A stretch of DNA of 63,564 nt, filler included, from Salisapilia sapeloensis CBS 127946 (taxonomy: Eukaryota; Protista; Oomycota): NCBI GenBank assembly GCA_023334545.1. It is 9 parts of 9 records of this genome, joined end to end, with 100 filler letters (N's around TTAATTAATTAA, not from the genome) between each part and the next. Parts side by side here need not be neighbours in the genome. Positions count along the whole stretch, not along the records: positions 34,994 to 42,082 come from JAADVB010000531.1; 8 more parts are not named here. One strand, given 5' to 3'. Both the position numbers and the translations under genes were made by a program. Positions 34,994 through 42,182 of this stretch are shown here, piece after piece (within the stretch, counting starts at the first letter, position 1; each line of letters starts with the position of its first letter). The notes beneath the pieces are model-generated. The model was not told the origin of the DNA, made no database searches, and worked only from the letters and a program-made list of their open reading frames with translations.

Positions 34994-35139
34994 ATGAGGC
35001 GCTTCCGTCTCCAGCAGAGAGCGTCGGCCAAGTCTATCGCTTGGCCAAAACCACGTCTGTAAGTGATGAAGTGGCAGTCGACATGGGAGATATGATCAAC
35101 ACCATCAGCAATCGAGGTCAAAGCAGAATCGATGAGTAG
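34994..35139 (+). CDS. 3' fragment of a gene emerging from the gap
   Basis: Open frame EALPSPAESVGQVYRLAK...QSRIDE* begins at the contig edge. Confidence 0.4.
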
Positions 35140-35229
35140 TCATCTTAAATCTTAAAGATAAATTTAGCTCTTGTTGTTCAGCAATTTTCTTTACAACGGC
35201 GTATTCGAGAACGAAATTAGACTTCTAGC

Positions 35230-36525
35230 ATGAGCATTCGGAAACTCAAGTCACGTGGCATCGGACGTCTTGAGCTGCTTGCCTGGATCAATGCTTTCCT
35301 TGAAACGGACTACACAAAGGTATACTTACACCTAACTATAGGCTTGATATAATATGCTTACAATGATACTGTTGATAGCTTGAGCATTTGAACGATGCCA
35401 TTGCCTATTGTCAAGTACTTGATGCAGTCCATCCAGGCAAGCTACCTCTTCAGGCGGTTAACTTCCAGCCTAAATCGCGGCTGGATTATGAGCATAATTG
35501 GCAAATTTTTCGTCGGGCTCTCAATGCCTGTGGTGAATCAACGGTATATCGTCGTTTTCATTGCAATACCTTATCTCTGTACGAATCTCCACTCATGCTT
35601 ACATATAGGACATTGCTGTTAAGCGATTAGTTGATGGCGTGTTCCAAGAGCACTTTGAGCTACTCCATTGGCTTCATAGTTATGTCTATCGAGTATATCC
35701 GGATGCGATTTTCTCTTATCAAGGTTTCGAAAAGAGAAAGCAGGTGCTAGGTTCGACGCACCAGGGCATTAACATTCACAATTTGAACCTTATACCTAGT
35801 GGAGAGATCAAACGGCCAAATGCAAATGCTACATCATTTGACCCGTCGATGCCTGAGGGTGACAGCAATAAGATCGAAGGTCGTGAGATAGCTAAAAGGG
35901 GTGTCCTCGATAGCGCTCCACTAGATCCCGTTGAGACCAAAGAAGTATCTAATCAATCGTTTCGATCACACATCCATCTCGTCTCGTAAGTATCGTGGCA
36001 TACAATATTTACATTTGCTGTATTAACGGTGAAGCTGTTTGATATAGCCACTCATACAATTGCACTATGCATGCCAAGGCGATCGTAGAGAAGGCAGAAA
36101 TTTGGCTCGAGAGGGCAAAAGATAGTGCCAAACAAATGGAGAAAGATGACAAACAATGTGCATCAAAGCTTCGTGGTACCGTACAAAGTCACCGTACAAA
36201 GGGATTAAAGAGATCCTCTTCCCTCAATCCTGCGCAGCTATTGCTACAACGACATCTTGCGGAATTAGTGAGCTACTGCGACTTATAGTCTGTCCTGATA
36301 GCAAAGCCTAAACTTTCATGACTTCATAGTTTGAGGTGTTACAGGGAGAATTGAATGGGCGTGTGGACGATCTAGTAAGGACTCATAGACACTGACATCT
36401 TTATAAGTTGTATTGTGAGCTAATCGTTTTGACGTACAATTTCACATGTGTAGATAGAGCTCCAAAAGGAAGTTGATATCATCGCTCACAGTCTAGACCC
36501 GGTTGAATGCTCTGTCAACAAGTAG
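35230..36525 (+). CDS. EB1/MAPRE-like calponin-homology protein, multi-exon
   Basis: GRLELLAWINAFLETDYTK|LEHLNDAIAYCQVLDAVHPG...VNF...YEHNWQIF...FQEHFELLHWL is the EB-type CH domain. The last exons are a short coiled coil. Confidence 0.75.
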
Positions 36526-36843
36526 TTGTCATTACCGGGAATGCCCTCACGTAAGCACTAGTGCTATTTGATTTTAAGTTGCTCTCAGAAAGAGGTACCC
36601 CGACGCAGAGATATTTTGATGCCTAAATTACCGGTAATCTATAACATATAGATGCTACGATAACCAAAAACTCGCGAATTCAAAGTAGTCTCTCCGACGG
36701 CCGCGTATTGTCTTAAACGAAATACTGTCGACTTGATTCTCGTCAAATATTACCAGACTTTCAGCACATTGCATCGTTCGAAATCGAAAATTCCCTTCGA
36801 TGTTGCGCACTGTGTTGAGGGGTACTTCCATTCACTTGGTCTC

Positions 36844-36850
36844 TCACTTC
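36844..36850 (+). promoter_or_regulatory. Candidate oomycete initiator (YCAYTYY) upstream of the LRR gene
   Basis: TCACTTC begins 47 nt before the ATG at 36891. The motif is short and could occur by chance. Confidence 0.3.
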
Positions 36851-36890
36851 AAAAAAAATTCTTCAGCTACTACTCTGTTTTTCAGCAGCT

Positions 36891-38749
36891 ATGAAGTGCA
36901 TCGGTCGAGCAACTATATACATCTTACTATTTCTCTGGGTATCTGCACGCATACATGCTGAGGACACCAATCGATATTTTCAATTTTATCGAAACAAAAG
37001 TATCGATGATTAATATCTTTTACATCATGTCTTTCAATACGACCAGGAAGAATTGTAGGCGTATCAGTTAAATATGAATAAGATTAACCATTTAATTTTT
37101 AAACATTTAGCGACCTGAGCGACAACTATATCACAAAACTAAACGCAACTCAATTTTCTCAAACCAAAATTCTGTACAGTAAAGTGGCATACTTGCTGGA
37201 TTAATCAGCTTTGACTCTTTGGTTTATGCTGTGTCTTTCATAACAATCCTGTCCAGGAGATTACAGGAATCTTTATAAAACTGGAAGAGCTGTACGTCTT
37301 CTATTGTCACAGATGACTTGAACTGGTAAACTTACTATCGATTAAACTGAGCAGGAAGATGAAAAATACAATGATCAAGGCTCTGGATGGAGACAACTTT
37401 CTTAAGCTTCGCAAATTGTAAATATTCATCTCGTGAAAGCAGCTTTGATGGTTCTATATGAGTTCTCTCACGCATATTAAACAGACAAGTCCGTTGGGGT
37501 AAACTGGTGGAGACTAGGGGTACCTGGGAATGTGTCGAAGAAGTGTGAGTCTTCAAATACCGCCAACTCCTGGTAGAAATTTCATTGTTTGTACTTGAAT
37601 AGAAATCTGCAAAATAGCAGTAACTCCAAATTCAATGTGAATATGCCCAATCTCAGAGACGCGTACGATCTCAGTAGTCAATTGTGTACTATATGTAACC
37701 GATAGAGTTTATAAATGTAGTCGCCTGGAAATAAATTTGATCAGAGAAATCTCAGAAATCTGTCCAAAACTGGAAATACTGTACGCTTAATATTACCTGG
37801 TTCAAACAAGCATTGTCCTTACCGATCGTTCGTTTAAACAGGTCAATGAGCGAGAACTTATTCAAGAGTCTGGATGGAAAAAACTTTTTCAAGCTCCGCG
37901 TCTTGTATGTATCCAACATGCTACTGCGACTTGGACGGCTGGATATCAAAACTCTAACGCATACAAATAAGAAATAACTTCATGGGCGAATTGACGAAAA
38001 TAACTGGTCCCTAGAATCACCTCGAAAGATTGTGAGTCTTCAACTAATGTCAATCCACCATCTATAGTTTGCATTCGTTGTTATGTAGAGACTTGGTGAC
38101 CACTAAAGTCACTAATATCAGCGCATCGATGCCTAAGCTCACAGAGGCGCATGATTTAGGCAGAATACTGTCTTTTCAGTATAACTGATACTTTATATGA
38201 GAGCTAGGATGTTCGCAGACGACAAACTCACTGATTTTGACTGCGTGAATACAAAGCTTCAGAAACTGTAAGTCTTATTTCCCAACAATCGAATACACTA
38301 AAGTCACAGGTTTGAGAATAGAGACCTGACAAAGAATAAACTGACGAAAGACAGTCTAAGTGGAGACAAGTACAAGCATCTCTGATTCGTGTACATTTTT
38401 ATTGCTTTTTCTTGCAAGCACTTGGCTAGAACATTGAAATAGTCGCATAAGCTTTAATGATATCAGGATTCTTGATAATCCGCAAGCGCATACTCTTGGC
38501 TCGATTACAAATCTGTATGTGACAGTACTTGAATACACGAGATCCGACACTTGTATCCTGAACTTGTTACAGGGTCGCGGACCACGCCAATTTAAAGAAG
38601 TGGGATGGTACCTGGGAAAATTTGGAGAAAGTGTAAGTATCTCTCGACTATGTAGTTCTATTCTCTGATTGTATATCGATCGTATGCAGAGACATTTATG
38701 AAAATGATTAGAAGCCTATCGACGCATACCTTCCAGTCATCAAGAACAT
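36891..38749 (+). pseudogene. Signal-peptide LRR gene with one LRR per 60-72 nt exon; in-frame stops
   Basis: Exon 1 (36891-37054) reads MKCIGRATIYILLFLWVSARIHA... Phase-2 exons follow at 37111-37173 (DLSDNYITKL), 37229-37291, 37355-37417, 37485-37544, 37603-37662, 37721-37780, 37842-37904, 37972-38031, 38089-38148, 38208-38267, 38322-38390, 38443-38514, 38573-38632 and 38690-38749. Stops at 37011, 38012, 38383 and 38709. Confidence 0.8.
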
Positions 38750-39153
38750 GCCCATAGTTGGAGAATAAACTCAAGACTATGTACATAAGCACCGTCTGCC
38801 ATTCGACCTCGAACACTCATCTGTTTGAATACATCTCAGCCAATTTTACAATGCATGACACGTTTTTAAATATATAGATTACTGTATACATTCAAAGTTC
38901 TTTTCAAATTAAGGATGGAGAGGATCAATCTACGTGAACGATGATGTATCCAATAAACATCCCTTACGAACAAGCTTTTTAGCAAGCTTTAATTCTCACT
39001 TTTGATCTCTTTATGACGATCGCACCCAAGCGTTAGACTCTTTGTCGACAAAAATGATGTGATCGGAGATACTTGTTCACCGTGGATCAAATATGAGAGA
39101 AGAAATGAGATAAAAGTACATCCTTGAATAAACGAGTTAATTTCCATATCTCT

Positions 39154-41165
39154 TCAATTTTCTTCATCACGATCGACGCCTAGCTGTTCAGCCCAATTGA
39201 ATTTAAAATTAAAATCAACACCTACATAGAGTACCACAGTTAATTCGCTTATGTTGACAAAAGTCTATCCTACAGACAGTTGCTTACCACAATGCATCAA
39301 AGTAAATTGGAGAATGAACCATATACTTGCAATACTCCTTGCTGTGATTTGACGCCATTGGGTTTCCAAAGAATATCCAAGCAACTGCATTGCTGAGAAT
39401 CTGAATCGTTTCTTGAGCATGTATTGGAAAGCAAGCAGAGTCGCTGCTTCCATGAGTGCGTACAGCAGAATATCGATGGATCCAATTTTCAGGCCTTCAA
39501 AAGACATGTTGCGTGTGTGTGGATAGTATAGTGCATTTGGTAAGTGATACAGCACCCATGTATGCACGACGTACACTATTGGAATTGCAACTTCGACAAG
39601 CTCTGTCATCATACAATATTCGGCATGATAAAGTAGTTTCAAGGCTTCATATACGAGTTTCACCTCCTCTGGCTCAGACTGGGGACGCTCTTGGAGGTTG
39701 AGCCCTTTGTCTGCAATCGGTGCTAGCGGCATGATGTTCGTATTCGATTCGAACATACTACTCTTGTCTTTCGCTTGGATCACTTTTATCTCACTTATCT
39801 TCTTGCGCGTTTTAGGCTTTGCAGTAGCATTCGGCTTGCCATTACTGTCACTTCCACATGTTCCATCTATAAGTTCCTCAATTCTAAACTGCTCTGGCTC
39901 AACTGTTCGTTTAAAAAATATCGATTGGCCGTTTTCTCTTGCAACTAGCGACTCTACCTGTTCCCTGACGCTCGGTATTTGACATAGCTCGATCACGCTG
40001 GATACCAAATCTCCCTTAGAACTATTACTGGCATTGTATTGTGCTAGTGCTTGAAGCAAAGTCTTGCTATCGCTCTCCATCTCTAAGATCGACAGTAGAG
40101 CTTGGATAGCATCAACACCAATGACTATGATAGATGCCCACATCGATTTGGCTGTCTGCATACAAATAGAGACGAAAAGAGCATGAAAAACCTGTAGCAA
40201 TGGAGATGTCGGGAATTAGATACATTTTGAATCTCGCAGTCATACAGTGTATACGCACGTACCTCGACGTTAAACGTTGTAAGCTCCGGTATGGACTCTT
40301 CTTGAGAAGACATGGCAAGAGCATAAATGTTTTTTAGGCCAAACTTCAATAGTGGTAATACACCGATGAATAAGACTTGCTGTGTTTTAGAAAGCAGTTG
40401 GAAGATAGCGTTATAGCCATTGTAAAGTAGGACCATCCATATATGAAGCGACGATACATTAAGTTGAGTTTTTAACGCACGCTCTTGATGAGGACTACCG
40501 TCAAATCCAACTTTTCTGAGCAACACGAAAAAGAAGGATGTGTTCACTAAGACAAAGGGCACAGAGCATGTCACTGTCGTAAATGGAACAGGAAAAGTCC
40601 AATAGGCAGCAAGAAACATGTTCGATCCTAGCACGAGTAATGCGGTGGTAATCGCAAATAGGAAAGTTTTCCCCAAGTGAATTTGTACGTTCGGGACGAA
40701 AGGTAGTATCTGATAGGCAAAAGAAAAGCTTGTAAGTACCAAAGAGAAATAGGATCGGATCCAGAAGACATATTGTTCATCCCAAGGATCAAGCGGTGAA
40801 CGCAATGGTACTAACTCGACGGTTGTTTCCAGAATAAGACCTGATAGAGTCGCAAGCAAACAGTACCATAGTACTCGCCAATTCGAGGCTGCAGAGCAAT
40901 ACTGCTCTAAGTCATGAAGGCGTTTAATAGAGTAGGCTCCTCGATTGTAGATCTGTATCTTGAGGTATGCATAATAAACAGCTATAAGCTTTGGTTGGAT
41001 GCTTTTGCACAGTGAAATCTTAGACGGCTCAGCTATAGTCTCGGCTTTGTCCTCATAATAAGCTTCTGAGAGTAGACTAGAATCAGCTACTTTCATTATA
41101 GTGATAGCTACGTCGCAGTCTTTAGAGGTAGGCAAAATGGCTCCTTCAAGAACTGGCATGCACAT
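39154..41165 (-). CDS. Oomycete multi-pass membrane protein (YNRGxYSIxRL family), 3 exons
   Basis: IQIYNRGAYSIKRL, many TM segments, an intron after FNVEV-type sequence leading to FHALFVSICMQ, and a terminal exon GVDFNFKFNW. Confidence 0.75.
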
Positions 41166-42182
41166 GATCCGTGAAACGGACATCCTTCACTACTATTTAT
41201 AGCGTCTATCGAAGAGAATGTTTGATTCGTCCAATTGGAGCAATCGAGAGCAAGTGCATGATGGAGCAGATTCCAATTTAAAAAGAAATTGGTGAGATGA
41301 TGTCAATATGGGCATACGTTCAAGAATATCACATGCATTTCATCAAAGTTATGCACGAGATCCGTAAGAGAGAACCGATAGAACGGCTATACAGAGCTCT
41401 GAACATGCCAGGTTACCGTTTATTTGTACCTTTCGGATACAGTAGAAATCAGAAGACTTCTTATTCTCAGCATTCAAAGTGATATATATTGAATGGACAG
41501 CTAGCAGAAATGCGACGAGAAGCGATATGGATATTGTAGTAGGAGCGAATGGGCGAGCGCAGGACACCACCTACCAGTGAGTCAAACGCATGTCAGCCTA
41601 GCCTGCGCATTTCTCCAAGGGTTTTAAATGCATCTACAAGCATAAAATTGCTATCGAAGACACAAGAGCAAATGTCTACCCGTTGCAACACGTACATTTA
41701 CTAGCAAGGTATGGCTACATTTTCAGACTTGGTAATGAATGCACTCTTGTTTAAATAGAAACCGGCACAACGAATCGCTCATAGCCTAGTGTCCAATTCA
41801 ATGCTGCGGACCTCTAAAATACCACAGGAGATATCACCTAAGTCTGAATAACGAGATATGGAGCTGCTCCACATAGGAAGCACGCATCAACTTTGACGAT
41901 AGGCTTCGCTCTGTGCCCTACAATCATTCAGTTATTTCGCTATGGACACCCATTGCTCTTTAATTTATATTCGCACTCACACCATGGAGTACCTTTGCTT
42001 TGGTGTTTGCATTTCATCGTGGACTATGGTTGATGAAGCAATATTCATGCAGACATTTCTACATCAATTATGTCCAAGGTAGNNNNNNNNNNNNNNNNNN
42101 NNNNNNNNNNNNNNNNNNNNNNNNNNTTAATTAATTAANNNNNNNNNNNNNNNNNNNNNNNNNNNNNNNNNNNNNNNNNNNN

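Follow-up and report, generated by a model that had tools for sequence, protein, structure and literature searches.

Does the stretch at positions 36891-38749 of the window, that is, of the 63,564 nt of DNA (filler included) analysed here from the oomycete Salisapilia sapeloensis CBS 127946 (assembly GCA_023334545.1), contain a gene for leucine-rich repeats (LRRs) cut into one-repeat mini-exons and, if so, does that gene still have an open reading frame? An earlier note on this DNA had described a hidden LRR gene in which a signal-peptide exon is followed by 14 symmetric mini-exons, and had likened it to modular LRR genes of brown algae. The locus lies in a piece of the window (positions 34994-42082, from JAADVB010000531.1) that has a G+C content of approximately 40% and contains intron-rich genes.

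For the exon listing, we collected all segments flanked by AG and GT that have a length divisible by three, start at the third base of a codon, and end after two bases of a codon; E3 and E10, each of which is missing one canonical splice site, were placed by homology. The resulting mini-exon array spans positions 37111-38749 on the plus strand and follows a signal-peptide-like ORF (Table 1). It contains 14 exons with the lengths that had been claimed (nine of 60 nt, three of 63 nt, one of 69 nt, and one of 72 nt), and both peptides quoted in the earlier note were found, in E2 and E8. Nine exons are fully clean (E2, E4-E8, E11, E13, and E14). From E2 to E15, the introns measure 58, 63, 67, 58, 58, 61, 67, 57, 59, 54, 52, 58, and 57 nt, and all 13 of the 13 junctions are in phase 2. 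The earlier statements that every junction is in phase 2 and that introns measure 52-67 nt thus hold for this part of the locus, but neither extends to E1, which ends in phase 1 and is separated from E2 by an intron of 111 nt. The codons split between E2 and E15 specify, in order, L, L, L, V, A, L, L, L, A, L, V, L, and V, and the residue at the split is the hydrophobic position directly before the "xLxxNxL" part of the next repeat. In every case the intron thus interrupts, between bases 2 and 3, the codon that supplies the first hydrophobic residue of the LxL..N.L core, and this constant position makes every internal exon a symmetric (2-2) module; the claim that loss or doubling of any internal exon leaves the frame unaltered is therefore formally correct.

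Table 1. Exons, defects (a to f), and neighbouring genes of the mini-exon locus, in coordinates of the window.
Feature	Position	Strand	Length	Description
CH-domain (EB1-like) gene	35230-35800, continuing towards ~36300	+		At least two short introns
E1	36891-36999	+	109 nt	ATG and signal-peptide-like exon; 36 codons plus 1 base; ends in phase 1, out of frame with E2 (defect a)
E2	37111-37173	+	63 nt	Type A; clean LRR exon
E3	37232-37291	+	60 nt	Type D; donor intact, TG at acceptor, no in-phase AG upstream (defect b); inactivated exon
E4	37355-37417	+	63 nt	Type A; clean; cassette copy 1 (37355-37780)
E5	37485-37544	+	60 nt	Type B; clean; cassette copy 1
E6	37603-37662	+	60 nt	Type C; clean; cassette copy 1
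E7	37721-37780	+	60 nt	Type D; clean; cassette copy 1; homologous to E3
E8	37842-37904	+	63 nt	Type A; clean; cassette copy 2 (37842-38267)
E9	37972-38031	+	60 nt	Type B; in-frame stop at 38012-38014 (defect c); cassette copy 2
E10	38089-38148	+	60 nt	Type C; GC at donor instead of GT (defect d); cassette copy 2
E11	38208-38267	+	60 nt	Type D; clean; cassette copy 2
E12	38322-38390	+	69 nt	Type A; in-frame stop at 38383-38385 (defect e); third, rearranged copy (38322-38749)
E13	38443-38514	+	72 nt	Extra canonical LRR exon; clean; third copy
E14	38573-38632	+	60 nt	Type B; clean; third copy
E15	38690-38749	+	60 nt	Type C; in-frame stop at 38709-38711, no donor (defect f); third copy, array end
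Convergent neighbour gene	41183-40269 and 40191-39265	-	613 codons	Open

That the array encodes LRRs is indicated by several comparisons. With stop codons entered as X and all breaks left unmended, the exon-by-exon translation contains seven LRR core motifs, as compared to a mean of 0.53 and a maximum of 4 in 2000 residue shuffles; under loose and strict definitions the counts are seven and six, respectively, versus 0.5-0.7 in the shuffles. A profile built from the 12 stop-free exon peptides matched 21 PDB entries, 19 of which are LRR proteins (LRRTM, repebodies, variable lymphocyte receptors, LRRC8, LRIG1, TLR2, and dynein light chain 1 are represented among the LRR matches); the best match, LRRTM (E = 2.5e-06), aligned as 10 successive repeats. 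The array thus has the make-up of an LRR protein, with 14 tandem units of 20-24 residues and an L..L.L..N/C/T.L core, and the hydrophobic residues show autocorrelation peaks at lags of 81 and 20 residues. A chance arrangement of AG and GT dinucleotides and hydrophobic codons in AT-rich non-coding DNA might be read from the silence of Pfam, which gave no match to any single exon peptide; however, only five of the 12 peptides reach the 20-residue minimum of that scan, the others falling below it, and the longest chain of clean exons (five, E4-E8) exceeds the maximum of three obtained in 300 first-order Markov simulations of the region. The simulations, the residue shuffles, and the PDB profile together refute a chance pattern, to which we give practically no weight. 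Exon anatomy, PDB profile, and motif counts therefore bear out the central proposal of the earlier note, namely one LRR-like unit per symmetric phase-2 mini-exon.

All-against-all comparison of the exon peptides separates four exon types, A (E2, E4, E8, and E12), B (E5, E9, and E14), C (E6, E10, and E15), and D (E3, E7, and E11); of these, A and D are canonical LRRs, and B and C depart from the canonical pattern at the Asn position. The types recur in the order A-B-C-D, except that the first copy comprises A and D only (E2 and E3), and direct repeats at a spacing of 487-489 nt connect E5, E9, and E14 as well as E3 and E7. These two observations identify the array as a tandemly duplicated cassette of four exons and approximately 488 nt, which also accounts for the 81-residue periodicity. 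Apart from the extra E13, cassette order is constant within the locus, and tandem duplication of the cassette is the only process visible there; neither the recognition repertoire proposed in the earlier note nor exon shuffling is evident from it. Tandem Repeats Finder reported nothing relevant, the cassettes being too diverged, and Rfam gave no match on the piece. No other LRR units or array remnants were found in the flanks or on the opposite strand of the piece at 34994-42082; downstream of the array end at 38749, approximately 500 nt without any ORF of more than 52 aa precede the convergent neighbour gene.

The cassette copies have diverged considerably. Copies 1 and 2 show an identity of 0.51 in exons and 0.58 in introns; pooled pN/pS between cassette copies is 0.70, and copies 1 and 2 differ at 41, 32, and 44 first, second, and third codon positions in 77 codons, values that, in exons too short for the purpose, do not separate neutral decay or relaxation from diversifying selection. 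Despite divergence of approximately 50%, all exons are still multiples of three with the same phase, yet intron lengths drift. Because exon length, phase, and hydrophobic skeleton were kept, most of this divergence probably occurred under selection on the reading frame, and residues outside the hydrophobic skeleton were probably free, or driven, to change. Several introns of copies 1 and 2 (37418-38321) match each other as well as the exons do or better; for example, the introns at 37545-37602 and 38032-38088 are 66% identical (z = 3.3), and exons E5 and E9 are 48% identical. The pattern implies either exon change beyond the neutral rate or constraint on parts of the introns. This conservation of introns alongside exons would also fit a silent reservoir of LRR cassettes from which recombination or gene conversion supplies functional paralogues with exons, as would the LRR-only content of the locus, which includes no downstream domain; LRR-only loci have been considered a possible reservoir in brown algae (PMC11378527). 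However, a start and signal exon is present, as in an ordinary gene, and cassettes as old as these (approximately 50% diverged) fit poorly with active homogenisation, making such a reservoir very improbable.

The neighbouring genes bear on both the origin and the quality of the sequence. The gene upstream of the array encodes a CH-domain (EB1-like) protein, the first 30 residues of which are near-identical to an oomycete-specific family of CH proteins (Pythium, Lagenidium, Aphanomyces, Phytophthora, and Achlya). A 56-residue exon of this gene has its best relatives in Pythium oligandrum (58%), Globisporangium ultimum, Lagenidium giganteum, Aphanomyces astaci, Phytophthora, and Achlya, and three CH exons taken together are 65% identical to a P. 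oligandrum protein over 142 columns; in the CH tree, the gene groups with P. oligandrum (support 94/89) on a long branch. No near-identical protein was found in a collection of 15 billion proteins, and the DNA seems to come from an oomycete lineage that is fast-evolving or unsampled. The oomycete origin assigned to this DNA is thus upheld by the best matches of the CH-domain gene and by its grouping with P. oligandrum. Beside the CH orthologues of P. oligandrum and L. giganteum, we found neither an LRR gene nor a relative of the convergent gene's membrane protein, and the LRR locus is therefore not conserved by position. The convergent gene contains a single canonical intron of 77 nt (40268-40192, GTACGT...CAG) and at least five hydrophobic segments resembling membrane spans. 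For its 352-residue N-terminal ORF, searches of 5.8 billion proteins and of metagenome contigs gave no homologue, and the sole Pfam signal in the gene, DUF1235, is sub-threshold (21 bits, with a cut-off of 25); the gene seems to encode an orphan membrane protein. Five of the 13 GT donors of the array (within 37174-38396) begin with GTAC (GTACAG, GTACGT, GTACGA, GTACGC, and GTACAT), and so does the donor of the neighbouring gene's intron at 40268; a GTAC donor may be a preference typical of this lineage.

The array carries six defects in approximately 290 codons (Table 1), so that, as the sequence stands, it does not form an open spliced reading frame, and the hidden gene of the earlier note does not survive as an intact gene. 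A ciliate-like variant code behind the in-frame stops was ruled out, as the standard code leaves the neighbouring genes open and the CH gene belongs to an oomycete. Sequencing or assembly errors in a gene that is intact in the organism could be suspected at the phase break between E1 and E2, because a short homopolymer lies there and length errors are common in such runs; base substitutions, however, which do not alter length, make up five of the six defects. The adjacent gene of 613 codons and the CH-domain exons contain neither frameshifts nor stops, which makes a generally error-ridden assembly unlikely, and we consider it improbable that errors of this kind account for the defects.

The E1 ORF has a basic N-terminus followed by a hydrophobic core at residues 8-17 (mean Kyte-Doolittle value of 2.45); when E1 is joined to E2, a stop is reached within two codons. 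Over its final 20 nt, E1 is similar to the 3' end of E2 (17/20 nt) and shares its codon register, and the two differ in their distance to the donor, which is where the phase difference arises. No alternative ATG exon combining phase 2 with a signal peptide was found within 600 nt upstream. By the RxLR/Crinkler definition (a signal peptide followed by RxLR(-dEER) or LxLFLAK), the locus does not qualify as an effector gene, since no RxLR or LFLAK motif was found in E1 and the exon peptides showed none either. There is nothing to mark the product as a translocated effector, and a part in host interaction is conceivable. The role in extracellular recognition suggested in the earlier note would derive solely from the signal-peptide-like N-terminus predicted for E1, the exon that is out of frame with the array.

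Taken together, these data lead us to regard the locus as probably a decaying member of an exon-modular and probably secreted oomycete LRR family, whether as a pseudogene or as a gene with "inactivated exons". Each exon codes for one leucine-rich repeat of 20-24 residues, and the array grew by tandem duplication of the cassette of approximately 488 nt, with its two canonical (A and D) and two irregular (B and C) exon types, giving an 81-residue super-repeat. Under this reading, the repeats would have diverged strongly while the gene was in use, retaining exon length, phase, and hydrophobic skeleton, and function would have been lost later: the signal-peptide exon is now out of frame with the array, stops have arisen in three exons, and a splice site is gone from each of two others. 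The sequence of E15 past its stop still resembles that of its sister exons. The ancestral product was probably a secreted LRR solenoid serving as a binding surface, intact paralogues probably exist, and the copy described here is probably non-functional now.

Several observations weigh against decay. The exons that bear stops, lack an acceptor, or have a GC donor could each be skipped in frame, so that most of the defects need not be fatal; the stop in E15 could be a normal terminator, GC donors are sometimes used, and the notion that the E1 tail is a former phase-2 end would have just 17 of 20 matching nucleotides behind it. The main rival of the decay reading is accordingly a working gene in which E3, E9, and E12 (and perhaps E10) are skipped and translation ends at the E15 stop, yielding an LRR protein of 9-10 repeats; the dead exons would be tolerated inside longer introns, as they are in Ectocarpus ROCO genes. 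The symmetry of all internal exons, which makes every skip frame-preserving, the nine fully clean exons, and the precedent of "inactivated exons" within expressed Ectocarpus genes are all consistent with such a gene. Against it, the sole signal-peptide and start exon is out of frame with E2 and is not replaced by any phase-2 first exon in the 600 nt upstream, and skipping would require introns of 175-303 nt in an array where the others measure 52-67 nt. We therefore judge a working gene unlikely, though less so than either assembly error or a silent reservoir, and continue to favour a decaying copy.

The arrangement of one LRR per phase-2 exon is established for the ROCO genes of Ectocarpus and other brown algae, which use 72-nt exons (Zambounis et al. 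2012, PMC3341825; PMC11378527), and the analogy with Ectocarpus ROCO-LRR exons that the earlier note had drawn is backed by these two papers. In Ectocarpus, disruptions of the kinds seen here affect approximately half of the ROCO-LRR loci, and individual LRR exons that carry a stop or have lost a splice site are annotated as "inactivated exons" (PMC3341825). The locus shares with the Ectocarpus type its stramenopile host, an array of many symmetric phase-2 exons of one LRR each, and the frequent occurrence of pseudogenes and inactivated exons in that type. In contrast, brown-algal exons are uniformly 72 nt (24 residues) and their introns are long, whereas the array here consists of exons of 60-63 nt plus one of 69 and one of 72 nt, separated by introns of 52-67 nt; brown-algal LRRs precede a ROC-COR GTPase, whereas the locus here has a signal-peptide-like N-terminus and no other domain. 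Here, unlike in the Ectocarpus type, four exons in fixed order were duplicated together as one cassette, and the shuffled order and antisense LRR exons of that type were seen neither at the locus nor in the piece. The locus thus works like the Ectocarpus ROCO family but is not a member of it, as it differs in both the 72-nt exons and the GTPase domain.

Two further systems are comparable. The 90-bp-exon LRR genes of Tetrahymena consist of tandem exons of equal length with an extreme phase-2 bias (Xiong et al. 2019, PMC6564038); they have in common with the present locus tandem LRR exon arrays, phase 2, a shared junction codon, and growth by repeated duplication, but differ in having exons of exactly 90 nt, the ciliate genetic code, and thousands of genes, as opposed to one broken locus. 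In vertebrates, LRR units correspond to exons with a single intron phase in the LH, FSH, and TSH receptors and in the LRR domains of NLRs (cited in PMC11378527; PMC6642158); in the gonadotrophin receptors this phase is 2, and having all introns in one phase permits in-frame exon skipping. The vertebrate receptors differ from the array here in that their exons measure approximately 70-75 nt or hold two repeats, and in that they are conserved, single-copy, unbroken, and combined with other domains. Full-text literature searches found no report of such genes in oomycetes, which is an absence of evidence only. The design of one LRR per phase-2 exon being already known elsewhere, the oomycete locus adds a broken example of it.

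A metagenome scan with an alignment of the type-A exons returned 435 pattern matches, none of which was related. What this one locus demonstrates is limited to the occurrence of the architecture in this lineage and the decay of this copy. On a more speculative view, which we put forward tentatively, secreted LRR proteins made of symmetric exons of 60-63 nt make up an expanded family in an unsampled oomycete lineage of low G+C content and diversify by cassette duplication, exon death, and exon skipping; such a family would form a modular surface or recognition repertoire, either parallel to the brown-algal one or co-inherited with it, and the locus described here would be a dying or reservoir member. 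For genome annotation, ORF-based and many ab initio gene callers overlook genes of this kind, and broken copies are easily over-interpreted. Oomycetes include major pathogens of plants and animals. Should there be intact paralogues, the construction of LRR binding surfaces from frame-neutral exon modules, known from brown algae, Tetrahymena, and vertebrates, would extend to oomycetes, which would bear on whether this architecture is ancestral in stramenopiles or arose repeatedly, and on the means by which a filamentous pathogen could alter a binding protein that it secretes.
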